From positions 54,774 through 118,773 of the forward strand of contig NIVC01003113.1 of NCBI GenBank assembly GCA_002269645.1: DNA of 64,000 nucleotides, given 5' to 3'. Source of the DNA: Macrostomum lignano (Eukaryota). Both the position numbers and the translations under genes were made by a program. Of this stretch, positions 15,412 to 43,446 are shown piece after piece (positions within the stretch are counted from its first letter, which is position 1; each line of letters begins with the position of its first letter). The notes beneath the pieces were generated by a model. It ran no database searches. It had not been told where the DNA came from and saw only the letters and a program-made list of their open reading frames with translations.

Positions 15412-16720
15412 TTTGATTCATTCCCGCCACCTTCAACACCGTTTCCGCTCCTTCATGTCACCCTTCCCGCTCCTTCATGTCACCCTTCCCGCTCCTTCAT
15501 GCCACCCTTCCCGCTCCTTCATGTCACCCTTCCCGATCCTTCATGTCACCCTTCCCGCTCCTTCAGGCCACCCTTCCCGCTCCTTCATGTCACCCTTCCC
15601 GCTCCTTATTCATGCCACCCTTCCCGCTCCTTCATGTCACCCTTCCCGCTCCTTATTCATGCCACCCTTCCCGCTCCTTCATGTCACCCTTCCCGATCCT
15701 TCATGTACTCACCCTTCCCGCTCCTTCATGTCACCCTTCCCGCTCCTTCATGTCACCCTTCCCGCTCCTTCAGGCCACCCTTCCCGCTCCTTATTCATGT
15801 CACCCTTCCCGCTCCTTCAGGCCACCCTTCCCGCTCCTTCATGTCACCCTTCCCGCTCCTTCATGTCACCCTTCCCGCTCCTTCATGTCACCCTTCCCGC
15901 TCCTTCATGTCACCCTTCCCGCTCCTTCAGGCCACCCTTCCCGCTCCTTCATGTCACCCTTCCCGCTCTTTCAGGCCACCCTTCCCGCTCCTTCATGTCA
16001 CCCTTCCCGCTCCTTCAGGCCACCCTTCCCGCTCCTTCATGTCACCCTTCCCGCTCCTTCATGTCACCCTTCCCGCTCCTTCATGTCACCCTTCCCGCTC
16101 CTTCATGTCACCCTTCCCGCTCCTTCATGTCACCCTTCCCGCTCCTTCATGTCACCCTTCCCGCTCCTTCATGCCACCCTTCCCGCTCCTTCATGTCACC
16201 CTTCCCGCTCTTTCAGGCCACCCTTCCCGCTCCTTCATGTCACCCTTCCCGCTCCTTCAGGCCACCCTTCCCGCTCCTTCATGTCACCCTTCCCGCTCCT
16301 TCATGTCACCCTTCCCGCTCCTTCATGTCACCCTTCCCGCTCCTTCATGTCACCCTTCCCGCTCCTTCATTTCACCCTTCCCGCTCCTTCATGTCACCCT
16401 TCCCGCTCCTTCATGTCACCCTTCCCGATCCTTCATGTCACTCTTCCCGCTCCTTCATGTCACCCTTCCCGCTCCTTCATGTCACCCTTCCCGCTCCTTC
16501 ATGTCACCCTTCCCGCTCCTTCAGGCCACCCTTCCCGCTCCTTATTCATGTCACCCTTCCCGCTCCTTCAGGCCACCCTTCCCGCTCCTTCAGGCCACCC
16601 TTCCCGCTCCTTCATGTCACCCTTTCCGCTCCCTCATGTCACCCTTCCCGCTCCTTCAGGACACCCTTCCCGCTCCTTCATGTCACCCTTCCCGCTCCCT
16701 CATGCCACCCTTTCCGGTCC
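15412..16720. repeat. 22-bp minisatellite (ATGTCACCCTTCCCGCTCCTTC)n
   Basis: Directly visible. The 22-aa-period ORFs in all three frames are a by-product of the array. Confidence 0.97.
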
Positions 16721-17511
16721 TCCAGGCCAACCTAGCCACCTCTCGTTCCTTCTCGGCCACAATTCCCTATCCTTCGGGCCGTGGAACCATCATTTGAAAC
16801 CACGGGATTCATCTGCCTATTTTGTTTCAGCAATTCCTAGACAAATTCGCACACGAAAGCAAGCCGCTATGCGTTTTATTTTTTGGGAAAAATGCATTTC
16901 AAACAGCCATATAATTTGGCGATGCCAATCCATCTCATTTTCAATGCCCGGGACAGATGACTGCAAAAGATGACTTGGACGCGTCAAAAATATGTGGACA
17001 ACTGGATCGGGTCGGCCGCTGCTTTCGGCCCATAGATTGATTGTCCGCGGCACCGCAGTCTCTCGCACAAGAAAGATGGAGATGGGAAAATAAATCAAGC
17101 CTGTCTCAGGTACCAGCAAGGTTTGTATAGGCGCAGTCGGAGTTGGCGCACAGTTTTGCTCAATAATTAACACCTCCTGCGGGTCCCAGAGCACTTAAGG
17201 TTTGGAGCGCTATTGGGGAGGTCCGAGATGGCCGGGGATTGATGATGAGCGCGAGTGGAGCTGACTAGGGGATTAAGGAAAAGCTATAGGCCTCAGCCTA
17301 GGCGTGTATAGGAGAGTGACTACGGCTGTCAACACGTCGGATGGACCAATGAGGACACTGCAGTTGAGCGTAAACTTCTTTAAATAGGAGCCAGACAGAC
17401 AGTGGCCCGGAGCTCGCGAACTCAAACGTCAGCTGCTGCAAGCGCCAAGCCAACCCCCAGAAATTAAGCCTTTAATAAGTTTGCCCGTAGATACAGTTGA
17501 CACACAAGCAA

Positions 17512-19468: not shown

Positions 19469-21660
19469 TTAGGACCCAAAGTCCAAATGGTCTTCAACGT
19501 TGAACTGTGGCCCGCCGCCAACTGCGCCGATTTCGCCTTCGCAGTCGCCGTCGCCGTTTACTCGCTCATGCTCGGCGCCGCCTTCTGCTGCTTCATAGTC
19601 CCGCTCCTGCGGTTCCAGGTCCTCGCCGTACTGTAGGGCCATGTCCACCTGACATTGAAAAATTCACAGGGTACAGATTCACAGACTTTACGGTGCAGAT
19701 TCACAGACATTCACGGTACAGATTCACAGACATTCACGATGCAGATTCACGGACATTCACGGTACAGATTCACAGACATTCACATGCAGATTCACGGACA
19801 TTCATACGGTGCAGATTCACAGACATTCACGATGCAGATTCACAGACATTCACGGTACAGATTCACAGACATTCACATGCAGATTCACGGACATTCATAC
19901 GGTGCAGATTCACAGACATTCACGATGCAGATTCACAGACATTCATACGGTGCAGATTCACAGACATTCACGATGCAGATTCACAGACATTCACGGTACA
20001 GATTCACAGACATTCACATGCAGATTCACAGACATTCATACGGTGCAGATTCACAGACATTCACGATGCAGATTCACAGACATTCACGGTACAGATTCAC
20101 AGACATTCACATGCAGATTCACAGACATTCACGTTACAGATTCACAGACATTCACGTTACAGATTCACGGATATTTACGCGGAGCAGATTCACAGACATT
20201 CACGATACAGATTCACGAATATTCACGATGCAGATTCAGACATTCACGGAGAAATTTTCATAAGCAAACACGGCAGAGTCCCTATGACATACCTGCAGCA
20301 GAGCATCCGTCACGCACTGCTCGTCGCTAACATCGAATGGCACAAATCGCACCAAACTATAGCTGTCAATCAAGTCTACAACTGCAGCGTTCAATCCGGC
20401 ATAGCGGGCAGAAAGGGGGCCGCCGTGTTCAGCCAGCAGGTGAGCCAGGTCCGGCTCCAGGTAGTCGGCTAATTGACGCTTCTGAGCCCGACTGAGCAGG
20501 TCCAGCTTGCTAAGCAGATTAACGTGCGGCAGCTCCAGATTAACCATGGCCGACAGGGCGGCGAACAGGCCCGAGACCAGTTTGCACGGATCCACAAGGA
20601 ACTGCGAGTCCAGCACGAACACCGAACAGAGGCGGAACTCGCGAGACTGTAAATAGTCCACAATCTGCCGCATCACGGGCAGGTGGCAGTACAGCTCGAT
20701 CTGGCCGGGACAGTCTAGCAGAAGGTATTCGTCCTCTGCCACGGCGTCTAATGCGTTGTCAAGCCAGTCCAGATTGTGCGCCAAGTAGTCCATGCAGAAT
20801 ACAAGGCCGCCATTGGGACCGAAGGCCAATTCGGAGTCCTCCATGGCGTCGTGGACCTGGTTGGATTGAAGAGGAGAGAATATCAAATCACGAATCACAG
20901 GCACACAAATACATATACAGGTGCACACCCAGACAGGATGTACTCGTATAGCGGCCACGGACTTTCTAATTGTTAAATACTTCTTTGTGTTTTGGGGGTT
21001 GGCAGCCGTAGCCTAGTTGTCTGATGTAGGCTCGATTCCAAGTGCAGTCACATCAATTTGGGGCTGAATTGGAATCTCGGCTTGGCTCTGCTCGTGAAAT
21101 TAACGCCCTTGAAGACCAACCCCCAAGGCACAGTGAAGTGTACATGCCCAACGATAAATAAAGTTAGGGCCGCTGTACACTCCTGTGTGAGTGTGTGCCT
21201 GTGGGTATGACTGCGTACGTATCCGCGCGCTTGTGTGCCTGCTCAGGGGAGTCGTTGCACTTTCCGACTGATTATCAAGACTTGAGAGAATTTGCGACAG
21301 TCAAGAAACGAGTTTGAGGAGTCTTAGTCAGCTGGCACAAAGCACTTAGCTAGGAACTTATCAGTAGACAAATAAGTTATGAAAAAATCCCATTCAACTA
21401 CTATTGTACTGCAATCATTTTTGCACATTCTCTTCTTGCTACTCGTTAGTAGACGATTTTTGATTCCCGTATAATGTTAATCGCACCTGGATAAGATCTC
21501 GAACGTCAGCAACAGGCTGATAGTCGAAATGCTCAGCGGCCGGATCCAAATTGGCCACTAGAATTCGTCGTCGACAGGCTTCAGCATGGCGCTGCAAGTT
21601 GGCGCAGTAGGTGCTCTTGCCGCTGCCGGCCGGACCGATCACTAGCTGGGCGTAGCGGGT
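19469..21660 (-). CDS. GPN3: GPN-loop GTPase 3
   Basis: Exons 21660-21487, 20856-20293 and 19648-19469, all phase 0, GT-AG. Motifs [39 protein letters not shown] and LQYGEDLE. No genomic ATG at the N-terminus; coding starts immediately after ctgcag. Confidence 0.95.
19665..20255. repeat. 22-25-bp minisatellite (CAGATTCACAGACATTCAC...) in the last GPN3 intron
   Basis: Directly visible; explains the overlapping repetitive ORFs at 19507-20472. Confidence 0.95.
21005..21254 (+). mobile_element. tRNA-derived SINE, truncated copy
   Basis: B-box ggctcgattcc; body aacgataaataaagttagggccgctgtacactcctgtgtgagtgtgtgcc is shared with the copies at 46949 and 60938. Confidence 0.85.
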
Positions 21661-21694
21661 CTGCAGTGAGCCGACGGGCAAGACTCTATGCTGC

Positions 21695-23282
21695 TTGCGG
21701 GCGGAATGCACTGCTGGGTCTGATGCAACTGCTGCTTTCACTATTGGGTCTGATGCAATTGCTGCTTTCACTATTGGGTCTGATGCAACTGCTGCTTGCG
21801 GGCGGAATGCACTGCTGGGTCTGATGCAACTGCTGCTTTCACTATTGGGTCTGATGCAATTGCTGCTTTCACTATTGGGTCTGATGCAACTGCTGCTTTC
21901 ACTATTGGGTCTGATGCAATTGCTGCTTTCACTATTGGGTCTGATGCAACTGCTGCTTTCACTATTGGGTCTGATGCAACTGCTGCTTTCACTATTGGGT
22001 CTGATGCAACTGCTGCTTTCACTATTGGGTCTGATGCAACTGCTGCTTTCACTATTGGGTCTGATGCAACTGCTGCTTTCACTATTGGGTCTGATGCAAC
22101 TGCTGCTTTCACTATTGGGTCTGATGCAACTGCTGCTTTCACTATTGGGTCTGATGCAACTGCTGCTTTCACTATTGGGTCTGATGCAATTGCTGCTTTC
22201 ACTATTGGGTCTGATGCAACTGCTGCTTTCACTATTGGGTCTGATGCAACTGCTGCTTTCACTATTGGGTCTGATGCAACTGCTGCTTTCACTATTGGGT
22301 CTGATGCAACTGCTGCTTTCACTATTGGGTCTGATGCAACTGCTGCTTTCACTATTGGGTCTGATGCAACTGCTGCTTTCACTATTGGGTCTGATGCAAC
22401 TGCTGCTTTCACTATTGGGTCTGATGCAACTGCTGCTTTCACTATTGGGTCTGATGCAACTGCTGCTTTCACTATTGGGTCTGATGCAACTGCTGCTTTC
22501 ACTATTGGGTCTGATGCAATTGCTGCTTTCACTATTGGGTCTGATGCAACTGCTGCTTTCACTATTGGGTCTGATGCAACTGCTGCTTTCACTATTGGGT
22601 CTGATGCAACTGCTGCTTTCACTATTGGGTCTGATGCAATTGCTGCTTTCACTATTGGGTCTGATGCAACTGCTGCTTTCACTATTGGGTCTGATGCAAC
22701 TGCTGCTTTCACTATTGGGTCTGATGCAACTGCTGCTTTCACTATTGGGTCTGATGCAACTGCTGCTTTCACTATTGGGTCTGATGCAATTGCTGCTTTC
22801 ACTATTGGGTCTGATGCAACTGCTGCTTTCACTATTGGGTCTGATGCAACTGCTGCTTTCACTATTGGGTCTGATGCAACTGCTGCTTTCACTATTGGGT
22901 CTGATGCAACTGCTGCTTTCACTATTGGGTCTGATGCAACTGCTGCTTTCACTATTGGGTCTGATGCAACTGCTGCTTTCACTATTGGGTCTGATGCAAC
23001 TGCTGCTTTCACTATTGGGTCTGATGCAATTGCTGCTTTCACTATTGGGTCTGATGCAACTGCTTCTTGCACTACTCGGTCTGATGCAGCTGCTGCTAGC
23101 ACTACTAGGTCTGATGCAACTGCTGCTAGCACTATTGGGTCTGATGCAACTGCTGCTTTCACTATTGGGTCTGATGCAACTGCTGCTTTCACTATTGGGT
23201 CTGATGCAATTGCTGCTTTCACTATTGGGTCTGATGCAACTGCTGCTAGCACTACTCGGTCTGATGCAACTGCTGCTAGCGG
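21695..23282. repeat. 30-bp minisatellite (ACTATTGGGTCTGATGCAACTGCTGCTTTC)n between RPL12 and GPN3
   Basis: About 50 near-identical units with an interspersed AAT variant; degenerate units at the 23050-23282 end. Confidence 0.98.
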
Positions 23283-23606
23283 GCACTACCTGGTGATATT
23301 TCAAAACGACTGCAGCTGACTGTAGATGATTAGGAGTTGATAAATACACGACTGGAACTGAGCTTTAGCTAGACACAATCAACCCAAAGTTTCACTAACA
23401 TGGAAGATCTAAACATGGAAGAATTGAACGAAAATGTATAAAAATGAGTGAAGCGAAGACAGAGGCGATTTCTTCCAGAGAACACGCAGACCTCAGTCTG
23501 GCTTTATCAATTAGCCAATCAATTTATTTTTTTACTTAGTTGTACTCTCCCAACAACAGACGCATATAGCAGCCGGTGTGTCAATCGCTAACAACAGTTT
23601 CAATTG

Positions 23607-24101
23607 TCATTCTGGCACAGCATAGGAGCCGTCGTTAACCTTGTCAATAATGTCGTGCGGATTGGAGCCGTCCACTGTGCAGCCTACAGATTGGGCTGTG
23701 CCGAGAATCTCCTTCACAGTGCCAGCCATGGTCTTAGCCATCGATCTCGGCCGCATAGTCTTGGCAATGTCGACCACCTCGTCGAAGGTAATGTTGCCGG
23801 TGTGTTTCACGTGCTTCACTTTTTTGCGATCGCGCGGCGGCTCGTTTAGCGCGCGAATGACCAAAGCTGAAGCGGTGGGGACCACGCTAGCCACGGCCTG
23901 GCGATTCTGAATAACCAGCTTCACCGTAACCTTCAGGCCTTTCCACTCTTTAGTAGCCTTGGCAATATCTTCGCCGACCTTCTTTGGCGACAGGCCTAGC
24001 GGACCGATCTTCGGCGCCAGCGAGGCTGTGGCGCCAACTTCGCCGCCGACGGCGCGCAAGTAGACAATGTTAATAGCGGTGGGATCGATCTTGGGCGGCA
24101 T
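23607..24101 (-). CDS. RPL12: 60S ribosomal protein L12 (uL11), intronless
   Basis: 164-aa ORF MPPKIDP...[33 protein letters not shown]...[21 protein letters not shown] on the minus strand at ~23523-23528. Confidence 0.97.
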
Positions 24102-24244
24102 CGCTATTGGTTACGATTGCTGCTGCATGCATAAAAAATTAAAATAGATTATTATACTACTGATCAGTTATTGAGTAGCACTGACTGACTACACTTTAAA
24201 ATATACACTTTTAAAGTTAAAATATACACTTTAGACAGCGTGCT

Positions 24245-24755
24245 GAGCAAATAGCCCTACTACTAGAGTATCTGGGATGTCAGTAGCCCTACTAGAGTAT
24301 CTGGGATGTCAGTAGCCCTACTAGAGTATCTGGGATGTCAGTAGCCCTACTAGAGTATCAGGGGTCAGTCAATAGCCCTACTAGAGTATCAGGGGTCAGT
24401 CAATAGCCCTACTAGAGTATCAGGGGTCAGTCAATAGCCCTACTAGAGTATCAGGGGTCAGTCAATAGCCCTACTAGAGTATCAGGGGTCAGTCAATAGC
24501 CCTACTAGAGTATCAGGGGTTAGTTAATAGTCCTACTAGAGTATCAGGGGTCAGTCAATAGCCCTACTAGAGTATCAGGGGTTAGTCAATAGCCCTACTA
24601 GAGTATCAGGGGTCAGTCAATAGCCCTACTAGAGTATCAGGGGTTAGTCAATAGCCCTACTAGAGTATCAGGGGTTAGTCAATAGCCCTACTAGAGTATC
24701 AGGGGTTAGTCAATAGTCCTACTAGAGTATCAGGGGTTAGTTAATAGTCCTACTG
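24245..24755. repeat. 29-31-bp minisatellite (GTCAATAGCCCTACTAGAGTATCAGGG...)
   Basis: Directly visible, between the 60-aa ORF and RPL12. Confidence 0.95.
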
Positions 24756-24999
24756 AAGTATCTACTGAACTAACTAGACCCAGAATTAATTAACAGTAAA
24801 TATAAGTAAACAACCTAAGCACCCAAATAACTGGGTTAAAGTACAGAATGCACAGTACAAATAATTTATTTATTAATATCTACAATTTCAATTGTGAAAT
24901 CTAACGCACACAAGTACTCTAGCACAAACACACTCGATAAAGATCTAAATCGCATTGAAACCGAATCCATCAACTGTTCATTTTTTCGCTCAGTAGTAA

Positions 25000-25182
25000 C
25001 TACGAAGAATTTTGCCTGGCCGCTTCGGCCGCACTCAATCGTTCGGCTTTGTAAGCGGCAAGCTGTCTGTAACGCATCAGCTTAACAAAGAATACAAATC
25101 CGGTGCCGAATGAGACAAACACGACCACTGTGCCAACGAAACTCTTGCCTAGATGGTCCAACTGGCGAAACCGTTGCAGCAT
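25000..25182 (-). CDS. Small single-TM protein, possibly a COX14-like cytochrome c oxidase assembly factor
   Basis: 60-aa ATG ORF preceded by a pyrimidine tract and cag (25190). One hydrophobic segment. RQLDHLGKSF...VKLMRYRQ...AAE resembles, from memory, COX14 KQLADIGYKTF...VRVYHYFQ...AAEE. AATAAA at ~24865. The family call is tentative. Confidence 0.5.
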   Translation of the reverse strand: MLQRFRQLDHLGKSFVGTVVVFVSFGTGFVFFVKLMRYRQLAAYKAERLSAAEAARQNSS

Positions 25183-26291
25183 CTCAGGCGCTGGAATAGG
25201 GGAATCAAACTTTCGGCTTGAGAATATGATTTTAGTATATGTAGACTAGCACACGAGCCCTCTTTAGGGGCGTGCAGTTGAAAGCGCAAAAACGGCTTAA
25301 AAAACTACCATTCTGAGATTTAAGCACCCGGTACCCCAGAAGGGTAAGGATAACTTCCCTGTGGAGAGAATATGTCGGGCGCCGGTGGGCAAGTCTTTGC
25401 TTAATGCTAAGGGAAGGGGCTTAAATATTAGCAAAAGATGCTTTTTGCGAAGGTCAAGATTTTTTCGACTGTGAATGCATTGTGAGAATTGAATTGAACA
25501 AAAACTGATTGACTGAATTATGGTTCTGACAAAGATTGAATCACAACAGGCTTTTTATTAATCATCAGTTGACTGGCTGAATTGCAATTGCGACTTGAAT
25601 TAGAGGGTAACAGTGCTCATAAAGTTGATTGCTGAAATGCTTTGGCGCATGGAGGGGATTGCTGAGATGCCAAAGGATTCAGCCATGGCTTGAACTTCTT
25701 AGAGCGCTTTGATGCCAAAGAAGATTATCCACCTAAAGCTGACACAGACTTTACTAAGATAATATTGTACTGTATGAATAAAACATAATACTCAAACGTA
25801 GAATGCCTCAGTTTATAATAAAAAAGCGGCCTCTACCAATTGTTTATTTAACAATTCGACTGTTTTAAAATGACCTCAGATGATGCATCTAGAAAAATAA
25901 GTATAAAAATTGCTTAGCAGATTCAATGAATGATCAGGTTTGTCTTTAAACTCGTAGTTAACAGTACATATTGAATATATAAAGTATCAGAAAATATACA
26001 ATAAATGATCGAGGTGCATATTTAATTTACTTGTAGGTAATACCAATAGGAATAATTGAGAAAATTTCGGAATAATGAACGTATTATGCAAAACACCAAC
26101 ACTAAATGAAAATGAGTAGAGGTAATTAACAAATGGGAGGTCCTGTAAAAATAGATAAAAATTGACTATAAAAGATGAAGCAACTGTTTAGGAAAATAAC
26201 TTCATGTTAAAATATTGCACGACAATATAAATATCAAGCTTCACGAGGAATCCCTTCAAAATTTTGAAGGCCAAATATCTGTCTGGTCTGG

Positions 26292-28110
26292 GATCTGAGA
26301 TGCTAACAGCATGAATTTGAGATATGTGGAAGCTAACAGCATCAATTTGGGATCTGTGGAAGCTAACAGCATCAATTTGGGATCTGTGGAAGCTAACAGC
26401 ATGAATTTGGGATCTGTGGAAGCTAACAGCATCAATTTGAGATCTGGGAAGCTAACAGCATCAATTTGGGATCTGTGGAAGCTAACAGCATCAATTTGGG
26501 ATCTGTGGAAGCTAACAGCATCAATTTTGGATCTGTGGAAGCTAACAGCATCAATTTGGGATCTGTGGAAGCTAACAGCATCAATTTGAGATCTGGGAAG
26601 CTAACAGCATCAATTTGAGATCTGGGAAGCTAACAGCATCAATTTGGGATCTGTGGAAGCGAACAGCATGAATTTGGGATCTGTGGAAGCTAACAGCATC
26701 AATTTGGGATCTGTGGAAGCTAACAGCATCAATTTGGGATCTGTGGAAGCTAACAGCATCAATTTGGGATCTGTGGAAGCGAACAGCATGAATTTGGGAT
26801 CTGTGGAAGCTAACAGCATGAATTTGGGATCTGTGGAAGCTAACAGCATGAATTTGGGATCTGTGGAAGCTAACAGCATCAATTTGGGATCTGTGGAAGC
26901 TAACAGCATCAATTTGGGATCTGTGGAAGCTAACAGCATCAATTTGAGATCTGGGAAGCTAACAGCATCAATTTGAGATCTGGGAAGCTAACAGCATCAA
27001 TTTGGGATCTGTGGAAGCGAACAGCATGAATTTGGGATCTGTGGAAGCTAACAGCATCAATTTGAGATCTGGGAAGCTAACAGCATCAATTTGAGATCTG
27101 GGAAGCTAACAGCATGAATTTGGGATCTGTGGAAGCTAACAGCATCAATTTGGGATCTGTGGAAGCTAACAGCATCAATTTGAGATCTGGGAAGCTAACA
27201 GCATCAATTTGGGATCTGTGGAAGCGAACAGCATGAATTTGGGATCTGTGGAAGCTAACAGCATGAATTTGGGATCTGTGGAAGCTAACAGCATGAATTT
27301 GGGATCTGTGGAAGCTAACAGCATCAATTTGGGATCTGTGGAAGCTAACAGCATCAATTTGGGATCTGTGGAAGCTAACAGCATGAATTTGGGATCTGTG
27401 GAAGCTAACAGCATGAATTTGGGATCTGTGAAAGCTAACAGCATGAATTTGGGATCTGTGGAAGCTAACAGCATCAATTTGGGATCTGTGGAAGCTAACA
27501 GCATCAATTTGGGATCTGTGGAAGCTAACAGCATGAATTTGGGATCTGTGGAAGCTAACAGCATGAATTTGGGATCTGTGAAAGCTAACAGCATGAATTT
27601 GGGATCTGTGGAAGCTAACAGCATCAATTTGGGATCTGTGAAAGCTAACAGCATCAATTTGGGATATGTGAAAGCTAACAGCATCAATTTGGGATCTGTG
27701 AAAGCTAACAGCATCAATTTGGGATCTGTGAAAGCTAACAGCATCAATTTGGGATCTGTGGAAGCTAACAGCATGAATTTGGGATCTGTGGAAGCTAACA
27801 GCATCAATTTGGGATCTGTGGAAGCTAACAGCATGAATTTGGGATCTGTGGAAGCTAACAGCATCAATTTGGGATCTGTGAAAGCTAACAGCATCAATTT
27901 GGGATCTGTGGAAGCTAACAGCATGAATTTGGGATCTGTGGAAGCTAACAGCATCAATTTGGGATCTGTGAAAGCTAACAGCATCAATTTGGGATCTGTG
28001 GAAGCTAACAGCATGAATTTGGGATCTGTGGAAGCTAACAGCATGAATTTGGGATCTGTGGAAGCTAACAGCATGAATTTGGGATCTGGGAAGCGAACAA
28101 GGTGAATACG
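26292..28110. repeat. 29/30-bp minisatellite (GGGATCTGTGGAAGCTAACAGCATCAATTT)n
   Basis: About 60 units with 29-bp variants, degenerating towards the PTS 3' end. Confidence 0.98.
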
Positions 28111-28262
28111 GGATCAATGAAGCTAACAGGGTAAATATGGGATCAGGGGGAGCTAACGGTGTAAATTGCAGATCTGGAAGGGAAGCAGCGTAAAATTAGG
28201 TCGAGACTAAAACACTACTGTAGCAAAATAATCACAATTCCTGGGCAAAGCAACATATAAAA

Positions 28263-28697
28263 TCAGGCCCTCTGGCCCTTATAGACGAAGGCATTCTTAG
28301 GCGTTTCCCACACGCACACCTTGTGCAGGAGACCGTCTGGCAGGTGAGGCTTCAAGCAATCCCAAGCGAACACCGCTAGCATTTCAGTTGTGCTGACGTG
28401 GCCTTCATTAGCAAAATAGGCCACGTCTTTGTCCAGACAGCGATGATCCACTTGGCTAAGCAGTTTCTCATCAATAATCTGATTTAAATTGGCGATATTC
28501 ATTACCATACCGGTGCTTGGATCTACTGGACCGCGGATACTCACCTCAACTGTATAGTTGTGCCCGTGACCATTGGGCCAGTTGCACTTGCCAAATAAGC
28601 TGGCATTCTCTTCAGCTGATAAATGAATCGAGTGCAACCTGTGGGCCGCTGAGAATGATGCCACTCGGGTCACCGTGACCACTGGCCTGCCGTTAGC
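28263..28697 (-). CDS. PTS: 6-pyruvoyl-tetrahydropterin synthase, intronless
   Basis: FSAAHRLHS, FGKCNWPNGHGHNY, GMVMN, VDHRCLD, STTE, VWETPKN..VYKG. The track's start is TTG; the conserved part begins right after ttgcag at 28697 with no ATG. Confidence 0.95.
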   Translation of the reverse strand, partial: ANGRPVVTVTRVASFSAAHRLHSIHLSAEENASLFGKCNWPNGHGHNYTVEVSIRGPVDPSTGMVMNIANLNQIIDEKLLSQVDHRCLDKDVAYFANEGHVSTTEMLAVFAWDCLKPHLPDGLLHKVCVWETPKNAFVYKGQRA

Positions 28698-31600
28698 CTG
28701 CAATTTTTGTCAGTTTCTAAGAATAACACAAATGTAGATCATTGTTAATTTTGTATATGTACCTTGTTGCTTAATGCAAAAACGTTTAATCTTTTATTGA
28801 AGTATGCTTATGTATGTTGCCATTTTACAGTGTGTAATAATTTTTTTAAATAGTGCATATATTGCATCTGCTGTTCTTTAACTATATATAATACATCTAC
28901 TACATATGATAGGCCTCCAGTTTTTATAACAATTTCTTAGAAAAAGTTGCATTTCAAAAATGTTACTGTTGTTATACTACGCGAATATTAAAAATATTTC
29001 TTATATGCAAAATATTCTGAATGTTCTATGTATTAATACTTTGTTTTAAATAATAGGAAAAATTTTACTATAAAAAGGAGTCAGCTGGGAGCCGAAATAA
29101 ATAACCTTTTCTTGTTTGTTGGTCTTGTACCATTGCTTCGAACATTGATCAAGTTTCAAATCAGCCTTGGGCTTGTGATCACTCGCATTACTTATTTCGA
29201 GTAGTAGATAGTGACATAGGAGTTGCCCCAAGATTGGGAGTTCAGTCCGTTCTCAGAGAATGAGACATCCAGATCTAGAATCTGAGAAATCGCCTTTAGA
29301 AGGCAGGAATCCTACCACAGGGTAGAGAAATCCAGGCTTAGAACCTAAGAAACGAGCAGGGCAGAGTACCCAGCAAAGTGCGCTGTGACCCTCTGATCCC
29401 GGGAATGCCCAGGACTGAGAATAATATATTTAGAGGAGTATAGGGATAGGATAGATGGTGCCTAAAGACCACTCAGACCAGAAAGTACAATAGAAGTACA
29501 GATGCTACCAATAAAAATGCATATGCTATCAATAAAAATACATACACTACCAATAGAAGTACATGCGCTACTAGTAAAAGGCAAGTAAAAACCAGTAAGA
29601 CTAATAAGAAGAAATAACCCTGTAACAACTTTGGTGGCAGCTTTAGGACATTCAATAATAAGAATTAGAAAAGTAGCCCTACAACATACATATGACACTA
29701 AAATTTTTCAAGTTGAACATATCTTGTTGCCTATTAGGTATATTTCCTATTTATTGCAATTCAATACACAAAAGTATTTAAGCTTATTTGAACTAATCTA
29801 GCCATAAATAATGGTTTTATTGATAATTTTTTTTTACCTTTTGAGAGAACTTAACAATAATGAAATGGCAAAATTAAGTTGAATTTTCTGTCACAAATAA
29901 ATCATTTATTTCAAGCATAAGGATTAGACCTATAAGAATTTGTTCCAATGATGTTTTATAGATGTTTAAAAGAAATTTAATATTAAAAATCATTATATTA
30001 AAATGAATTGCTTAACATTCAGTACTAGGTACTTTTTAATCAATGATATTTATTTACTTTAGTTACATATTTTATATTAAATAAGAAAAAGTTAATAATA
30101 TTGAGACAATTTATGACTACTTTCTGATTGGAGCAAAAATACAAGATTATTGATTGAAGTTATGTCCCATGTAGCCTGCCTTATATCTGAAGTATTTTGA
30201 ATCAGGAAGATAACCTAATACTTATAGCACCTAATATCTAGTACTTAAATTAAGGTAGAAAATTAAACACACACTCAATTGCCTTTGTAAGATTATATTT
30301 CCATTTATTTTATAGAGTATCAATACCAAATCACTACTGAAAGCACTACTAATGAACTTTTTCACATTAATAAAGGATATAATTTGCTAGTGTTTTATTG
30401 TACTTTATTATGTATAATTTATAAGTTTTTAAATCTATAATACAGTTTACCAAAGTATCTTTGTTTTATTTTGTATCAATTTTTTATATTTTTTTTATTT
30501 ATAACTATGGCTTTACCTCAACTCCTAAATTTTACATATATGCCAGAAAATTCCAGCATATAATAGAAGTGAAAATTTGTTGCCATAAAATCTAGCATAA
30601 AACAATCCATCCTTGCTAGAAAATTGCTTCACAGAGCTAGTGTATGGCTTAGCAATTGGCATACAAAAGATGAAATGTAATGTAAGAAAGGGTCCTTTAT
30701 TGTTGCAACAAAAAAGATCAATTATTGCTAGGGGCCTATAAAGTATTTTAAATAATGTCTAGTATATATTATGAGTAAATTTGTTTTTCTCATAGAAACT
30801 TGAATTATGGCATAGGGGTCACTTTTTCTGGTATACCATATAACAGAGTTGAGAGGTGGTGGCTTAGCTGCAGCTGCAGGGCTGTCCTGGAGGGGACACA
30901 GTGGGAAAGCATGGGCGCCCATTCCGCTAGACCCTATTGGAATAAGTGGTATTTTCGCGGACGGCGTCCGGCGCACTTTTTCTTTTTCCTCATAGTCATG
31001 GCGCATGGCGCGCTACGCGCGCCATGCGCCATGACGCACAGCAGCTCACAGGTAAGATGCAAGGAGGACATCACGCGCTACATACAGCGCTGCTGAACAA
31101 GGATGAGAAGCATGCACAGGAGAAAGTCAGCAGCACGGTGGAAATTCAGCAAACTGTAAGTAAAACTTGTAAACTTGTAAACGCGCACTGGCGCACAGTG
31201 GCGCACAACGGCGCATACCAGAGGACACCGGCGCATGGCGGCGCTGCGCGGCGGGCGCCGCGCCACATGCAGCGTTACCCTTGTGGCGATCCCATGTAAC
31301 GATGTAAGTCGTTACTTGTTACAGTACACTATTCACTGTTCTATCTAATGTAACACTGCATTCTACCAAAAAATAAAAAATAAAATAAAATATTTTCCTT
31401 TTCCTTTTTACCTTTGTTTTTGCCATTTGCTTACTTTTTATGTTTGTTTTGTTTTAAAAATTAGAAATTTAATTAAAAATTTTTTAAATTTCTATTTTCG
31501 GTTTAACGATCTCAATTTCTCATAATATAATATAGATAGCCCGTAACCGTCCCGTATATTGGCGCACAAAAATTGTTGCTATGTTGTAAAAAAAGGTCTT

Positions 31601-34600
31601 TTATTGTCGCAAGGCAGGTAGTGGCGGGCGCACAACGGCGCACACGAGGGTTTTTGTGTCGGCGCACGGCGCACAATTTTGGGAGAGGCCAAAATTTGTT
31701 CCGGCGCACACTCTGCCACCTTCCTGACTATGGCGTCCATACCACCTTAGGATTTGAAGATTGTCATGACGCACCGTCCAGGCCACTTTATGATTGCCAT
31801 GGCGCACTAGATGCACTGTCCACAGTGTCTGAAAACTTATTCCAATAGGGCCGCTAGAGAGAGGTGGTGGCTATCGAAGTTTACAAAATATGACTGCAAC
31901 CATATTTTTATAGTCATAGCTATAAGAGCAGTTATCTATCATAAGGATATCTATAGGGGGATGTCAGACCAAGGATAATATATAACAACTAGATTGTCAA
32001 ACTAGATTGTTGAATATGCCTAAAATGTGACTTGCAAAACCCCTGCTTTTAGCTCACTTGCTATACTGACTTATATAAAAACATTGCCTAGTAGTTAGAA
32101 AGCTAGCTAGGAACAAGGTAGCTTGTGGGCCATGGTGAATAAAGAGGTAAATATAGGAGTTTGTTTTCAAGGTTGTTATATGTCTTCCTAGTATATTTGA
32201 AACCCTCCAGCCAATGAGTAGGGGGTCCAGTGAGATTAACTTTTAAATTTTTTTATTTTATACTATGTAGTATGATAGACCTTGTTTATATGAGTAAAAA
32301 GATATATCCACCACAGTCCAGAAGAGGGGTGGTATGCCGGATTAATCCAGCATACACTCACGACTTTTGGCATACACTTGGCATATAATTTTTTACTTTT
32401 TGAAATCTGGCATACTATTTGGTGTAAAAATATATATTCAAAAAGTGGCGTACATGTTCCTGCAGTTGCAGAATCAAATCAAAAAGTCTAAGAAAATAGT
32501 GTGCATGCAGTTAATAAAATCACATAGAAGAGTTTGTGAAAAGTGAATAAAGAATATAAAACAAGTTTCTTTTCAAGCAATTTCAAACTTTCTAGGTTTT
32601 TAGAGCTTGTAATAGAAAATTTAAACAAATTTTTACATGTTTTAAGTTTCCACTATAAATAATATCAGCAAAAAAGCAAAAGTATTAACCAAATTGTTAG
32701 GAAAAAAAGGTTACTTTACAATTACATAATTAAAAAAATAATTCATTGTTGCAACATAAAACAGGTCATTTATTGTTGCAACACTGGCGTAGATTTAAAA
32801 GTGGGCCTGCACTCAAAATTTGGCATACACTGGCATATCAAAAAAATTGTGAGAGATTTTAGTCCAGCATATAATATTCAGGGTGTTCCAAACTATGGCA
32901 TATCCATAGATCCGCACTTCATAGAGTTGTCTTTTTACTCTAATTAACCTAACATATAATTTAGCATACAATGTAAAAATAATTTTAATCTACAATCAGT
33001 ATATAACAATTAATACTTTTAACTGAAAAAATTATAGTTTACAGTTTATACAATGCAATGTAAAAAAACAAAAATTAATTCTTATCTTAAAATATCCTTT
33101 TATTCTGGCATTCTAGTATAAACACTTGCCACCTTTTTGTCTAATAAGGCCTATTTTTAGTATGCAGTAATTTTGTCAAAATCAACTTGCCACAATCTGC
33201 AATATAGCATAGGGTAGGCCTAGGGGCACGGCCTAAGTCTATTTGCAACTCAAGACAATATATACATAGAAAAATTAAATGACTAAGACTAGGGCCTATG
33301 AGTCTAAGACTATACCTAGAATCAAGATAACTTTATACCATGAATGTCAAACACAGAACAGTCATGACAGTTGACAGTTGGGCACCTAGAGGCAAAGGCA
33401 AACTGGACTGGGGTTGGCCTATCAAAAAGCATGGCCCACCAAAATCAAAGTGATGGACACGTCATAAGCCTACCGGACTTGCTATTAAAGAAATAGTTGT
33501 ACTTAAAATATAATAGACCTAAATATTAGTCATAGAGTCCCAGAAACTTCACATTAAATAAGGGTGGATGGTGGAAATTGTGTAAAGTCGTGTAGACTCG
33601 ACAGGTCGAATCGAATCAAGTGATTTAGGTCGGAGGTTGAGAAAATTATAAGGTTTAATAATCTCACTAGCAGGTTTAAAGGAATAGGACTCTCATGAAT
33701 ATATTATGCAGTAGTAATTTCTTAACAAACACTAAAGAGGTAAAAAAGAAAAAGTCAGATGGCTCATTCCATATAAGCATGGTCGTAACATGACAGGTTA
33801 TTTTTACTTATAAAATGAAATCTAATAATAGAATATACTAAACCAATATTTTAAATGAAAGATTATTTTGTCTAGAATATATTTATCTAGAGTTTCATAT
33901 AGATATCATCATTAGTATAGATGCTATTAAACCTTAAATGACACTTATGGTCGTAACGACAAGATTTTTGACATATAGAAACTAAAAGGTAAAAGTCTTA
34001 TAACATTTTTCATTTTTGATATTTTGCAATACATTTTTAAAATTTGACTAAGAACATCTTTAGAAATCATACTCTTTTATTAGAATATATAAACTCAAAA
34101 GGCAACAAAGATACAAAAGAAAAGGCAGCCTTATGGTCGTAACATTATGGTCGTAACATATTTTTTTCTGTCAATTCAGTAACTTTGAGGTACTAATACA
34201 TTAAAAATATAATAGATTATTTGGTCACCAATGCTTTTATCTGATGATGCAAATACTATACTTTTATCTATAGTTTGTTTCAACCTTCAAAAGCTTTCTA
34301 TTTGTTTTTAAAAGGTACAAAATCTTAATGATGTATTTTGCTTCAAAAAATGTCCAAATTTTTACAAAAATGACTTTTTGCCAATTGATAACATACTAAT
34401 CCAACATTTTACCATTCCTTTATTCTTAGATTGTATATATTGCACAATATAAACATTTGGTAAAAAAATAGGCTAATTAGGCAATGGCAAGCAAAAATAT
34501 TGACTTTTTTCTATTTTCCAAATATGTCCATCTTATATGGAATGAGCCAGATACAGACAGGCTGACCTCTGGTCGAGTCTGTTGGCAAATACAAAACTAC

Positions 34601-36880: not shown

Positions 36881-37034
36881 TCTAACTTTTATTTATCGTT
36901 AGGCATGTACACTTCACTGTGCCATGGAAAGTTGGCCCTCAAGGGCGTTAATTGCACATTGCACATGCAGGGCTATACGGTCTCGCACGTGCCGATAGGT
37001 TGTCAAAAGTCTGAATTTGCACAAGGAATTTTTC

Positions 37035-37925
37035 AAATGTCACTGGCACTCAAATGTCACTATGGCAGTCAAATGTCACTATGGCAGTCAAATGTCACTA
37101 TGGCAGTCAAATGTCACTATGGCAGTCAAATGTCACTATGGCACTCAAATGTCACTATGGCAGTCAAATGTCACTATGGCACTCAAATGTCACTATGGCA
37201 CTCAAATGTCACTATGGCAGTCAAATGTCACTATGGCACTCAAATGTCACTATGGCACTCAAATGTCACTATGGCACTCAAATGTCACTATGGCAGTCAA
37301 ATGTCACTATGGCACTCAAATGTCACTATGGCACTCAAATGTCACTATGGCAGTCAAATGTCACTATGGCAGTCAAATGTCACTATGGCAGTCAAATGTC
37401 ACTATGGCAGTCAAATGTCACTATGGCAGTCAAATGTCACTATGGCAGTCAAATGTCACTATGGCAGTCAAATGTCACTATGGCACTCAAATGCCACTAT
37501 GACAGTCAAATGTCACTATGGCAGTCAAATGTCACTATATGGCAGTCAGATGTCACTATGGCAGTCAGATGTCACTATGGCAGTCAGATGTCACTATGGC
37601 AGTCAGATGTCACTATGGCAGTCAAATGTCACTATATGGCAGTCAAATGTCACTATGGCAGTCAAATGTCACTATGGCAGTCAAATGTCACTATGGCAGT
37701 CAAATGTCACTATGGCAGTCAAATGTCACTATGGCACTCAAATGTCACTATGACAGTCAAATGTCACTATGGCAGTCAAATGTCACTATATGGCAGTCAG
37801 ATGTCACTATGGCAGTCAGATGTCACTATGGCAGTCAGATGTCACTATGGCAGTCAGATGTCACTATGGCAGTCAAATGTCACTATATGGCAGTCAAATG
37901 TCACTATGGCAGTCAGATGTCACCG
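37035..37925. repeat. 19-bp minisatellite (CACTATGGCAGTCAAATGT)n
   Basis: Directly visible; lies just 3' of the desulfurase-like gene. Confidence 0.97.
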
Positions 37926-38031: not shown

Positions 38032-41000
38032 TCAAGTTATCTGTCCCAGCAGCAGACTGTCGGCAGCTTCGTCGGGCATAGCAAACCAGCGCATTCGAGT
38101 CTCCAACTGCTGGCTGAGGCCGCTGTTGTCAAGCGGGTTCGCAGCTTTGGCTTTGCCGTCTTGTAGTCGCTGTTGGTAAATTAGCATTCAGATATGAGGC
38201 CAGTACACCACTTATTTAGATGCATGATGAGATTGTTAATCTACTCAAACACGACTTACCTTTCTAATACGATTTGAAGCAGACTGAAGTGCATTGGCAG
38301 CCGACTTTGCAATGCACTACATTAATAGAAATACAATTGCTTTGAATCCCATAAATCGCTACGATAAATGATCCAGGTTTGTGGCTTAAAAACAGGGGCG
38401 TCGCTACCGGGGGGACAGGGGGGCATGTCCCCCCCCCAGTAAGAGCCTATAGGGGGACATGCCAATGCTTTGTCCCCCCCCCACCCTACCTTGTTGACCC
38501 GTTATGGAAATCAATAATTTTGCTTCAGGGCGACAAAACATAGCGCCTGCGGCGCTAACATGAGTGCCTTCGGCGCTAAAATGAGTGCCTTCAGCGCTAA
38601 AATGAGTGCCTTCAGCGCTAAAATGAGTGCCTGCGGCGCTAACATGAGTGCCTGCGGCGCTAAAATGAGTGCCTGCGGCGCTAACATGAGTGCCTGCGGC
38701 GCTAACATGAGTGCCTTCGGCGCTAAAATGAGTGCCTTCGGCGCTAAAATGAGTGCCTTCGGCGCTAAAATGAGTGCCTGCGGCGCTAACATGAGTGCCT
38801 GCGGCGCTAAAATGAGTGCCTGCGGCGCTAACATGAGTGCCTGCGGCGCTAACATGAGTGCCTTCGGCGCTAACATGAATGCCTGCGGCGCTAAAATGAG
38901 TACCTGCGGCGCTAACATGAATGCCTGCGGCGCTAACATGAGTGCCTGCGGCGCTAACATGAATGCCTGCGGCGCTAACATGAGTACCTGCGGCGCTAAC
39001 ATGAATGCCTGCGGCGCTAAAATGAGTGCCTGCGGCGCTAACATGAGTGCCTGCGGCGCTAAAATGAGTGCCTGCGGCGCTAAAATGAGTGCCTGCGGCG
39101 CTAAAATGAGTGCCTGCGGCGCTAAAATGAGTGCCTGCGGCGCTAACATGAGTGCCTGCAGCGCTAAAATGAGTGCCTGCGGCGCTAAAATGAGTACCTG
39201 CAGCACTAACATGAATGCCTGCGGCGCTAACATGAGTGCCTGCGGCGCTAACATGAGTGCCTGCGGCGCTAAAATGATCGATGACAACACCGATTAGGAA
39301 TTTAGTCATGTACATGTAAAATCCTCGGCTTTGTCCCCCACCACCATAAAATCCTACATAAAAATGGTGAATTCGTACCTGCAGGCTGACCGGCTGCTGT
39401 TCCAAGTAGCTCATCCTGCTGACCGGCCGGTCCAGACGGAAATCTTTCAGGCTGGCAATTTGACTGGCATAGTCGGTGTGCCGCCAGGCCCCCGTGTGCG
39501 GGTTGCAGGTGTACTGAGAAACGGAGAGGGTTGAGTTGTCCTCTTGGAAGTTGTTGAAGACCGCAATTGATCAAAAACAATTGGATCCACAGAATAACAC
39601 AGAATGCCAAATCGAGCGATTTCCATGAAGCCGAATTAAAATTCGTGTGCACTACTCTTGTTGTGATAACTATGGCCAGTAGTATAAATTAGCGAAGAAT
39701 AATTTAGCAAAGATTTCAATTCTTGCACCGATTTTTAAACAAAAATGCTCGAATCGGCATTCTGTGTATATTCTGTGATTGGATCTATATGTTTGAAAAA
39801 ACGGGAAAATATAATTGCGGACTCAAAATCGATTTCATCGGGTTCTACCATAGACAGCACCCTAAAAATAGCATAAAAGATAGGAGCTTCTCTGGCTTCC
39901 CAGTCTTTAGTGGCATTTCTAACAAAGTCAGCTTACTAAACATGTGAACAAACCGTCACCTCGGGCAGCAGTTTCCAGCCGTGCTGGCTGATCATGTCGA
40001 TAGCGTGAAACAAAAACGCGACCATCTCGTTCGTGTAAAAGTACGGCAGGTTGACCCGCACAAAGCCGGGTCTGAAAAAAGTTTCAACACACAACCAAGC
40101 TTAGGTTGAACGATTGAAGTTGAGAAATGCAAATTGAGGCTCACTTCAGTATTTCCAATTCTTCAGGTATGGAGGCGCTGGAAAAAAGAGGAAATTTATT
40201 ATTGATTAGCCTGACGAGTCTTCAGGCTTTGTGATGTTCTCTAGGACTCACCGATCTAACTCAAGCCAGAGGTAGGCAAACTCCGACCCGTGGGCCATCT
40301 CTTCTCTCCCTTCTCTCCTCTCCCTTCTCTCCTCTCCCTTCTCTCCTCTCCCTTCTCTCCTCTCCCTTCTCTCCTCTCCCTTCTCTCCTCTCCCTTCTCT
40401 CCTCTCCCATCTCGCCCCTCCCTTCTCTCCTCTCCCTTCTCTCCTCTCCCTTCTCTCCGCTCCCTTCTCTCCTCTTCCTTCTCTCCTCTCCCTTCTCTCC
40501 GCTCCCTTCTCTCCTCTTCCTTCTCTCCTCTCCCTTCTCTCCTCGCCCTTCTCTCCCCTCCCTTCTCTCCCCTCCCTTCTCTCCCCTCCCTTCTCTCCTC
40601 TCCCTTCTCTCCCCTCCCTTCTCTCCCGTCCCTTCTCCCCTCTCCCTTCTCTCCTCTCCCTTCTCTCCTCTCCCTTCTCTCCTCTCCCTTCTCTCCTCTC
40701 CCTTCGCTCCTCTCCCTTCTCTCCTCTCTCGTATCTCCTTCCTTCTCCTCTCTTCTCCTCTATCCCATCTCCTCTCTCCCGTTCTCTAGCCTGCAACTAG
40801 ATTCTCCACTTGGCCCTTGAGGTAAAAAGGTTTGCCAACCCCTGACTCAAGCAATCGATAAAGACAACGGGTTGGCCTCTCCCGAAGAGACATTGCTCAG
40901 CTCTTACCTATCATTTTCCCGGCACATCTCCTTCATCTTCGGATAGTTATCTATGCAGTACTTCAGCCTAAAGTTCAATTGTGTCATTTTGTATGAGCAG

Positions 41001-43446
41001 CATGTCTTGAAGGATTGAAAGCAAAATGAAGTCACCTACCTGTTGATTCCATCCGCCAGGTAGGGAAACCGATTTTGAGTTTGTTGGTCGAATTCTAATA
41101 GATCCTGAGAGATTCAAGCAAGGTAATAGTCATATCACTCTATGCTACACTCCAATGCTTTAAATTTTTCACGTAGTACAAAAAAACAAATTTTGCATTA
41201 AAAAAAGAAAAAAAATTCGCACGCCCAGCCGCGACGCGACGCAATTGCATTGGAATTTCTGCTGGCTATTTTTAGCTAGGAATTATGCAGCCATATTCGA
41301 GTGCATTGATCCTGGCGTCAAGTGTGCCAGTCAATTAGTCATAGATCCGTAAAAATCGGCTCTATTAAATACGATACGGTAACTTTGAAAAGAGAAACTT
41401 TCTGCATCCAAGTCTTTCTAAGTCGTGTCTTCTAGTTGGGAAATTTCTATTCAGCTTCAGAGCGAAACCGTGTTACAGGTCGAACTTATGGTGAATTGTG
41501 ACAGCGACGTGAATACAGAGTCTTTCTCAGTATAAATATGGGCTTGAATTTATGGTGAAGTGAGTCATTGCTTAGCATGCTAAATCGAATGCCAGGAGGC
41601 ATCTTACCGAAGCGTACGGCCCAGCGCAGGCGCAGCCGGCCCTGCTCTGCACACCGTACAGGTCGTTGAGCAGAATGGCCACAAAGTTGTGGTGCAGAAA
41701 CAGCCCGGTCTCCCGGTTCACCACCAGGAAGGAGAAGATTGGCAGGCGTGGCTGTTGCCGGTTGCCAAGTAGCAGCACGGACTCCATGTCCGGCAGAATC
41801 TGCCAGGCCCAGCGGAGCAGCTCAGCCTCTCGGTTCTCAATGACCCGGTCTCCGATGGTGCGCTTAACCCGGAACACCAGGCCGCAGCGGATGCAATCGA
41901 CAATTGCCGGGGTGCCGCCCTCTTCGCGCGTCTCAACGTCCGCCTCGTACTGGTGCGAGTCGCGCGTGACGAAATCCACGGTGCCGCCGCCAGGCCGGTG
42001 CGGCACCCTGTTGGCGAAAAGGTGCCGCTTGGCCACCAGAACGCCTGGCGTGCCCGGCCCGCCGACGAATTTATGCGGCGACAAGAGCAACGCGTCGAAC
42101 GCGCCCGACTTGGCGCCGCGAGGGTTCATGTCCACCGACACGTAGGGCCCGGCACAGGCGTAGTCCCACACCGCGATGGCTCCGTAGGCGTGCAGCATGG
42201 CTGTCACAGAGGCGGTGTCGGTCACCGTTCCGGTGACATTGCTGGCGGCTGAGAAAGCTCCAATAAGCAGCAGTTTCTGCTTCTCGCCCGACCGTAATTG
42301 CTTCAGAGTCGCTTCTAACGCCGCCATGTCGACGCCACCAGCTGAATCCAGCGGCGTTCTAGTGCAGACGTCGGCCAGCTCCCGCCAAGGCAACAGGTTC
42401 GAGTGGTGCTCGAAAGGCCCGTGCACTACTGCAAGTTTCTCTCCTCGGCGGCGACGCTCCTGAAGCTCCAGGACTCCAATCAGCGTTTGCACAGCGCCAG
42501 TAGCACCGCTACCGGTGAAGATAAGTGCATCGTCTGGCCCAGCGTTGACGCATTTTTTGATCAAGCGTCTCGCCTCCTCCCTGTAGGCGTTGCTTTGAAG
42601 AGCGACCAGCGACCCACTACTGTGCGTGTTGCCGTACCTCGGTAGCACCGAGCTCTGGATGAAGTCTTCGATACAGCGGAGGCTCCTAAATGAGAGGCGA
42701 TAGCAAATCTATCTTAGTTACTGACAAGATACACATTTTAGTTTAATATTTCCACCAGTTTTTACTGTTCTCACCTGCCGGAGGCCACGTAATCGAAATA
42801 TAGAACTGAAATGCAATGAAATTCTATAGAGTTCAGACAGTGATCCACTGCCAGGCTGAGATTGTCATCGACCTCGACTTCACAAAACACCCCACATCGA
42901 GGTAACGTCACTAAACTCCCAAATCGAGGTGATGTCACTAAACTCCCCACACTGAGGTGATGTCCCTAAACACCCTACATCGAGGTGATGTGACTAAACA
43001 CCCCACACTGAGGTGATGTCACTAAACTCCCCAATCGAGGTGATGTCACTAAACTCCCCACACTGAGGTGATGTCCCTAAACACCCTACATTGAGGTGAT
43101 ATGACTAAACACCCCACACTGAGGTGATGTCACAACTCCCCAATCGAGGTGATGTCACTAAACTCCCCAATCGAGGTGATGTCACTAAACTCCCCACATC
43201 GAGGTGACGTCACTAAACACTGGTTTTCCGTCAGTTACTCAACACTTAGCTAGACTTATTCACTTCATATACTCACGTTTTCGCAAGCCAAACGGTCCAA
43301 CAAACACAGAGTCTCCGCCGATGACATTCTCGAGGAGAAAATCGAATTTTTTGCGCGCAGTTTTGTCAGCCAGTCGCCATTCCTCGCTAACAGTCTGCAT
43401 GTGTCGTGACAGCCAGGCAAGTATAACGTGGCTAGTATTGCAATAC
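38032..43446 (-). CDS. Class-V PLP-dependent cysteine desulfurase-like protein (multi-exon)
   Basis: Phase-consistent exons ~43446-43277, 42805-42775, 42685-41608, 41104-41040, 40967-40908, 40071-39960, 39513-39379 and 38169-38032. Motifs GPFGLRKLLYFDYVASGRSL, YGNTH, FTGSGATGA, EHHSN, SPHKF (PLP Lys), RAGCACAGPY (Cys), RPGFVRVNL and RWFAMPDEA. The 5' end is uncertain; ORF 43446-43916 may be an upstream exon. Confidence 0.9.
38395..39350 (+). repeat. Second member of the 14035 repeat family, with a 21-bp array, in the last desulfurase intron
   Basis: Starts caggggcgtcgc; (ATGAGTGCCTGCGGCGCTAAA)n at ~38545-39275; shared tail; the ggattttatggtgg..gggacaaa motif is present but inverted. Confidence 0.85.
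40298..40790. repeat. 14-bp polypyrimidine minisatellite (TCCCTTCTCTCCTC)n, intronic
   Basis: Directly visible. Confidence 0.95.
42880..43220. repeat. ~28-bp minisatellite (GAGGTGATGTCACTAAACTCCCC...), intronic
   Basis: About 11 variant units. Confidence 0.9.

Follow-up and report, generated by a model that had tools for sequence, protein, structure and literature searches.

Two conserved enzyme genes of Macrostomum lignano probably take their start codon from the spliced leader

The DNA considered here, which we call the window, is a stretch of 64,000 nucleotides (nt) from the flatworm Macrostomum lignano (assembly Mlig_3_7, GCA_002269645.1, contig NIVC01003113.1, positions 54,774 to 118,773); our locus L003 is the same DNA. 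Its minus strand carries two conserved genes, PTS (6-pyruvoyl-tetrahydropterin synthase) and GPN3 (GPN-loop GTPase 3), whose recognizable coding sequences begin at a splice acceptor and not at an ATG. From their sequences, both are most likely genes that undergo spliced leader (SL) trans-splicing, with pre-mRNAs that contain no initiator codon of their own and with translation starting at the AUG carried by the SL. The mechanism itself is not new, as it was described for flatworms in 2006; the novelty lies only in adding GPN3 and PTS of M. lignano to its examples. We compared the window with L001 and L002, duplicate loci on contigs NIVC01000606 and NIVC01000197 of this genome, and the features discussed are collected in Table 1.

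Two conserved genes without a genomic start codon

GPN3 is a GPN-loop GTPase 3 gene as judged by its domain, P-loop, GPN motif and closest similarity. Its full genomic open reading frame (ORF) has 3 exons and 305 codons; the product matches the Pfam family ATP_bind_1 (PF03029; 3.2e-73) over profile positions 1–240 of 240 and is 55–62% identical to animal GPN3 proteins. The P-loop GPAGSGKS occupies residues 9–16, and the GPNGG motif stands at residue 71. Apart from one additional N-terminal Thr, our model is 100% identical to the deposited protein PAA53214 (BOX15_Mlig009785g2, partial) on NIVC01003113.1. By fold family and aligned residues, PTS is an animal-type 6-pyruvoyl-tetrahydropterin synthase gene, its product matching the Pfam family PTPS (PF01242; 1.1e-29) and the human and rat structures 3i2b (4e-45) and 1b66 (9e-45). 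We take His19, Cys38, His44/His46 and the pair D83-H84 to be its zinc-binding and catalytic residues (three zinc His, a catalytic Cys and an Asp-His pair).

Read on the minus strand, the GPN3 junction is ...ggctcactgcag/ACC CGC TAC GCC CAG, with its first exon base at 21660; at greater length it reads ...gtcttgcccgtcggctcactgcag/ACC CGC TAC GCC CAG CTA GTG ATC GGT CCG GCC GGC AGC GGC AAG AGC. The PTS junction is ...aaactgacaaaaattgcag/GCT AAC GGC AGG CCA GTG, that is, ...aaaaattgcag/GCT, with its first exon base at 28697. These are exactly the junctions that the original prediction had described from the letters alone, ctgcag/ACC at 21660 and ttgcag/GCT at 28697. Its further claim, that the first internal Met of each protein follows essential motifs, also holds. 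The first Met of GPN3 is residue 63, beyond the P-loop, and that of PTS is residue 64, beyond His19, Cys38 and His44/His46, with D83-H84 also present in the protein.

The sequence upstream of the two acceptors offers no simple start. The in-frame TGA five codons before the PTS acceptor (28710–28712) rules out an unspliced upstream start for that gene. Upstream of GPN3, an ATG was sought in every frame from ~23400 to 21661 (1.74 kb), and none was found. In the reading frame of GPN3 itself, the nearest stop upstream is at 23367, and none of the intervening 568 codons (1704 nt) is ATG. The original prediction had drawn on this 1.7-kb open frame; that it is free of ATG is correct, but the frame is an artefact of the repeat and adds nothing to the start-codon argument. 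It was tried as coding sequence and rejected, since it consists of a 30-bp (3n) tandem array with a monotonous repeat translation. Its lack of stops arises because the period of the array is a multiple of three and is stop-free in that frame.

The spliced leader as probable source of the ATG

A single SL has been published for M. lignano. It is 35 nt long, CGGTCTCTTACTGCGAAGACTCAATTTATTGCATG, and ends in ...TTGCATG, followed by a GTAAG donor (PMC8629364); the same 3′ end is given in PMC5173321. The original prediction required an SL ending in AUG, and the organism has one. When the SL sequence was sought in the window with up to three mismatches (<=3), no match appeared, and the window therefore holds no SL RNA gene. 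The top trans-splice acceptor motif in M. lignano is [T/C]TNCAG (PMC8629364). Both TTGCAG before PTS and CTGCAG before GPN3 fit this motif, and both lie in phase 0. Joined to the SL, the exons would read ATG GCT AAC... (MANGRPVV...) for PTS and ATG ACC CGC... (MTRYAQLV...) for GPN3. On the minus strand [T/C]TNCAG occurs 179 times, or 0.0028 per base. That it should fall, in two genes and in phase 0, on the very base at which homology starts is therefore not attributable to chance.

Comparison with orthologs points the same way for GPN3. Of 118 orthologs that start with Met, 93 have the P-loop at index 9 and 18 have it at index 8; the Met supplied by the SL places it at 9, which restores an ortholog-like start as had been predicted. 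In PTS, the SL Met gives a motif offset of 15, which lies inside the variable N-terminal range of the orthologs, from 9 to 28.

In the mechanism that we propose, the spliceosome would join the 35-nt SL exon (...UUGCAUG) to the acceptor at 28697 for PTS or at 21660 for GPN3. The last three bases of the SL would become codon 1, in phase with GCU AAC... or ACC CGC..., respectively. The SL would thus supply the cap, the entire 5′ untranslated region and the start codon, and the products would be M-ANGRPVV... and M-TRYAQLV.... With Ala or Thr as residue 2, this Met would be expected to be cleaved off, so that the predicted mature N-termini are (Ac-)ANGRPVV... and (Ac-)TRYAQLV.... GPN3 would be a downstream cistron behind the ribosomal protein gene RPL12, itself behind a 60-amino acid (aa) ORF and PTS. 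Because these four co-oriented genes are each preceded by an acceptor, GPN3 probably lacks both a promoter and a 5′ exon of its own. We infer that the SL is joined at 21660 and 28697 and that ribosomes initiate at its AUG; the dependence of both genes on trans-splicing would then be obligate.

Table 1. Features of the PTS–GPN3 region, in window positions
Feature	Positions	Strand	Remarks
In-frame TGA five codons upstream of PTS acceptor	28710..28712	-	translation ...VILRN-stop-QKLQANGR...
PTS trans-splice acceptor (predicted), TTGCAG	28698..28703	-	fits [T/C]TNCAG; same in L001 and L002
PTS coding sequence, single exon	28263..28697	-	144 genomic codons and stop; no ATG before residue 64
Consensus-like 5′ splice site GAG/GTGAGT inside PTS coding sequence	28539..28547	-	donor at 28545
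Tandem array, 30-bp, ~63 copies	26289..28157		PTS to 60-aa ORF spacer; TRF-type repeat listing
Acceptor TTCCAG before 60-aa ORF	25191..25196	-	ttccag/CG, first exon base 25190; fits [T/C]TNCAG
60-aa ORF, single-pass membrane-like	25001..25183	-	own ATG at 25183; AATAAA at 24874
Tandem array, 31-bp	24260..24762		60-aa ORF to RPL12 spacer
RPL12 (uL11) coding sequence	23607..24101	-	own ATG at 24101, stop 23607; AATAAA at 23528
Tandem array, 30-bp	21715..23277		most of RPL12 to GPN3 spacer; two TRF rows (2.8 + 48.7 copies, ~51)
GPN3 alternative phase-0 AGs, caag/CAG and gcag/CAT	21690..21696	-	33 and 30 nt upstream
GPN3 trans-splice acceptor (predicted), CTGCAG	21661..21666	-	fits [T/C]TNCAG; after pyrimidine-rich stretch
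GPN3 exon 1	21487..21660	-	without ATG; ends ...DLIQ
GPN3 exon 2	20293..20856	-	GPNGG motif and first in-frame Met (residue 63)
GPN3 exon 3	19469..19648	-	TAA stop
Predicted SL–exon junctions			...TTATTGCATG joined to ACCCGCTACGCC or GCTAACGGCAGG
SL string at predicted acceptors			TTTATTGCATG then ACCCGCTACGCCCAG (GPN3, 21660) or GCTAACGGCAGGCCAG (PTS, 28697)
SL string at upstream GPN3 acceptors			TTTATTGCATG then CATAGAGTC or CAGCATAGAG

Public annotation of the two genes

For the Mlig_3_7 gene set, RNA-seq transcriptional units were cut wherever trimmed SL-containing reads formed peaks, and ORFs were then called (PMC5730564). In it, the deposited 5′-partial coding sequences start at the predicted acceptors or 3 nt past them. 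GenBank names GPN3 "partial" at three loci, with starts at T or R, and names PTS "partial" at the duplicate locus L002, with a start at N. The aminotransferase PAA53217, from the same annotation, is not flagged partial. On the contig of the window, a deposited 64-aa coding sequence starts at A, base 28697. Joining PTS codons 1–51 to the acceptor at 25190 reproduces this deposited sequence (28697–25149), a match in range and length only; the joined sequence would encode PTS cut short and followed by 13 out-of-frame residues. Provided that this match is correct, the PTS acceptor at 28697 is the very point at which a deposited model built on RNA begins. The join also suggests that PTS and the 60-aa ORF gene lie on one pre-mRNA, with the acceptor at 25190 serving both cis- and trans-splicing.

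An older, independent annotation treats the genes differently. Its GPN3 models start SLQTRY... or are fused to RPL12 (UniProt A0A1I8I3L8, 466 aa), and its PTS is a 79-aa protein that begins at an internal Met and is missing the catalytic residues. The RPL12–GPN3 fusion was rejected as a real protein, RPL12 having its own stop and AATAAA. A collection of 5.8 billion proteins was searched for an M. lignano GPN3 or PTS starting at a genomic Met and yielded none.

The chief value of the present cases is for annotation. The public models of GPN3 and PTS are 5′-partial, cut to an internal Met, or fused to RPL12, faults that come from gene finders relying on an ATG in the genome. In flatworm genomes, such models could be repaired by one rule: where a phase-0 trans-splice acceptor is followed by a coding sequence without an ATG, prepend Met.

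Alternative sources of the start codon

Several observations weigh against the SL as the source of these start codons at the acceptors proposed. First, in the same protein collection, no transcript-derived protein starting MTRYAQLV or MANGRPVV was found, only genome-based models. Second, the deposited coding sequences of some copies have starts that are shifted by one codon, without explanation. Third, L001 and L002 (9995–10003 in each) read ctgcTG/ACC, versus ctgcAG/ACC in the window (21658–21666). Fourth, every copy has two further phase-0 AGs upstream of the GPN3 acceptor; with 21690 or 21693 as first exon base, the protein would gain 10–11 residues. Finally, ATG directly followed by GT (ATG/GT), as at the end of an initiating exon, occurs upstream of PTS, at 29133 in the window, and at 30839 and farther upstream in all copies. 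Three other explanations were considered.

The one that survives best keeps the SL AUG as initiator but has GPN3 trans-spliced mainly at one of the upstream AGs, so that the protein would be 10–11 residues longer. Both AGs are in frame and are shared by all three copies, including the two without AG at 21660. However, AAGCAG and GCAAG depart from [T/C]TNCAG, whereas CTGCAG at 21660 fits it and follows a pyrimidine-rich stretch. The P-loop spacing that an upstream acceptor would produce is found in just 1 of the 118 orthologs, and the deposited GPN3 coding sequences begin at T or R, none of them farther upstream. Thus, we regard this variant as improbable.

A second explanation dispenses with the SL. 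Here, a cis-spliced upstream 5′ exon, perhaps a micro-exon ending in ATG, would provide the start. Flatworm acceptors are reported to serve both cis- and trans-splicing (PMC12582326), and in one deposited model the acceptor at 25190 is indeed used in cis. For GPN3, such a micro-exon, which the original prediction had named as the competing source, was looked for and not found: between the RPL12 stop and the acceptor there is no ATG/GT, and the only three ATGs all lie within the ~210 nt that directly follow the stop. For PTS, the ATG/GT occurrences noted above number 7 in 7.3 kb, which is the chance expectation. The nearest, at 29133, falls within a ~0.9-kb stretch of the window that is unaligned in L002, and neither L001 nor L002 has an ATG/GT within 1.75 kb (<=1.75 kb) of the PTS acceptor. 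Moreover, the RNA-seq-based deposited coding sequences are 5′-partial, so the transcript models contain no upstream in-frame ATG. A cis-spliced initiating exon is, on this evidence, quite improbable.

Least credible, and very improbable, is that these are decaying duplicates or pseudogenes, or that they are translated from an internal Met or from a non-AUG codon, so that the missing ATG needs no special mechanism: M. lignano is indeed a recent polyploid with many duplicated genes (PMC8629364), and the acceptor AG is gone from two of its GPN3 copies, but all copies keep intact ORFs that are 99.4–100% identical with mostly synonymous differences, no genomic-Met version of either protein was found among the 5.8 billion, and an internal start would delete the GPN3 P-loop or the zinc-binding and catalytic residues of PTS.

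The variant GPN3 acceptor in the duplicate loci

The substitution of ctgcTG for ctgcAG is accompanied in L001 and L002 by three further changes in the 54 nt before the GPN3 acceptor, and exon 1 is 100% identical. These 54 nt form the most diverged stretch among those compared. A protein variant lies nearby, A or T in ...RQL[A/T]DYLEPD. In older UniProt models, the T-variant has SLQ, implying CAG. The ctgcTG sequence may be a copy-specific or an assembly variant; otherwise, the L001 and L002 copies bypass that site. Within the coding sequences, identity among copies is 99.4–100% and the ORFs are intact; GPN3 and RPL12 together show 5 synonymous codon differences and 1 nonsynonymous one.

If SL trans-splicing supplies the AUG of GPN3, the acceptor AG could be regarded as part of the start signal. 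The change from ctgcAG to ctgcTG might then amount to a "start loss" through a single base, silencing GPN3 at L001 and L002 or forcing the use of the upstream acceptor, a reading that we hold to be possible, though doubtful. Were it true, ctgcTG would mark an early stage in how a recent polyploid loses duplicated genes, reached when the coding sequence is still 99.5–100% intact.

Relation to known systems

All reported flatworm SLs end in AUG, and the use of this AUG as initiator was shown in Schistosoma (Cheng et al. 2006, J Biol Chem 281:733, as relayed by papers citing it); the original prediction had treated this role as established, and that assessment stands. Several sources extend it. 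In Schistosoma mansoni, 28% of trans-spliced cDNAs have the SL AUG in frame, and >40 cDNAs depend on it (PMC9851317). In Echinococcus granulosus, an initiator role was inferred, the SL AUG sometimes being required for an N-terminus that matches orthologs (PMC3510090). A 2025 survey restates the role (PMC12582326). GPN3 and PTS resemble the Schistosoma and Echinococcus cases in that the SL ends in AUG, a phase-0 acceptor stands before codon 2, no genomic ATG is present, and the ortholog-like N-terminus needs the SL Met. They differ in that Schistosoma and Echinococcus are parasites, whereas M. lignano is a free-living macrostomorph, and in that AUG use is shown experimentally in Schistosoma but predicted here. 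In no paper that we found is GPN3 or PTS named as an SL-AUG target. The present cases add a free-living, early-branching flatworm with working transgenesis, in which SL AUG use is directly testable.

A second comparison is with the operons described in M. lignano (Wudarski et al. 2017, PMC5730564; Ustyantsev and Berezikov 2021, PMC8629364). The genome, the SL and the acceptor motif are the same, and those operons likewise consist of co-oriented genes with repeat-filled spacers of adjusted length <1 kb. Unlike the present work, neither paper analyzes the SL ATG as a start, and only generic mentions of it were found. Finally, the slORFs of nematodes, trypanosomes and Oikopleura also draw their start codon from the SL (slORFfinder, PMC9851317). 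As described there, slORFs mostly involve near-cognate NUG codons or alternative ORFs, whereas in PTS and GPN3 the conserved main ORF would begin at a canonical AUG.

The gene cluster and its spacers

The minus strand carries five co-oriented genes in the order class-V aminotransferase, PTS, 60-aa ORF, RPL12 and GPN3. Measured at the duplicate locus, the gap between the aminotransferase (PAA53217) and PTS is ~6.9 kb. Each of the last four genes is preceded by an acceptor, and a tandem array lies in every spacer between them. The arrays of the three spacers all differ (30, 31 and 30 bp), and GPN3 intron 2 holds a 23-bp array. In M. lignano, an operon has been called where neighbors are co-oriented, the repeat-adjusted spacer is <1 kb and the downstream gene is trans-spliced (PMC8629364). 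From the RPL12 stop to the GPN3 acceptor there are 1946 nt, of which 1545 nt are arrays, leaving ~401 nt; from the 60-aa ORF stop to the RPL12 acceptor, ~375 nt remain once arrays are subtracted. Both values are under the 1-kb threshold. The repeat-adjusted spacer between PTS and the 60-aa ORF is ~1203 nt; the deposited cis-splice nonetheless links this pair. Overall, the arrangement of PTS, the 60-aa ORF, RPL12 and GPN3 is compatible with a polycistronic unit.

The two middle genes provide a contrast within the cluster: RPL12 and the 60-aa ORF each possess a genomic ATG, and an SL ATG would only open short upstream ORFs there. At the RPL12 acceptor (gcag/CAG, first exon base 24122), it would read MQQS followed by a stop. 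At the acceptor of the 60-aa ORF, it would open an out-of-frame upstream ORF of 14 codons. The deposited 5′-partial coding sequence of the 60-aa ORF at the duplicate loci (62-aa) starts 2 nt past the acceptor. The 60-aa product, MLQRFRQLDHLGKSFVGTVVVFVSFGTGFVFFVKLMRYRQLAAYKAERLSAAEAARQNSS, has one hydrophobic segment and gave no match in a Pfam search. It may resemble small mitochondrial membrane proteins such as SMIM20.

Other features of the window

The stretch upstream of PTS that is unaligned in L002 is AT-rich and spans 28914–29811; in L002, ~70 nt stand there between the flanking alignments. More stretches without alignment lie near 30864–31859 and 33760–34548.

Long tandem arrays with periods of 14–72 bp abound in the window, at many sites between 14070 and 58589 (for example, 15437–16721, 37033–37923, 38537–39277 and 49647–51062). 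Those with a period that is a multiple of 3 give rise, on both strands, to spurious ORFs that run to several hundred codons.

The class-V aminotransferase PAA53217 at the head of the gene series is a protein of 591 aa, encoded at 41572–42648 (minus strand) together with upstream exons. Its best matches outside Macrostomum are mostly bacterial SufS-like proteins or selenocysteine lyases, plus one from a cnidarian and one from an echinoderm, at ~50–53% identity. This taxonomic spread is unusual for an animal gene.

An Rfam scan of the whole window returned no match. On the plus strand, a 464-codon ORF at 5350–6744 has sub-threshold Pfam matches to Phage_integrase (2e-5) and to the QRICH1 domain (5e-5), and it may belong to a tyrosine-recombinase mobile element.

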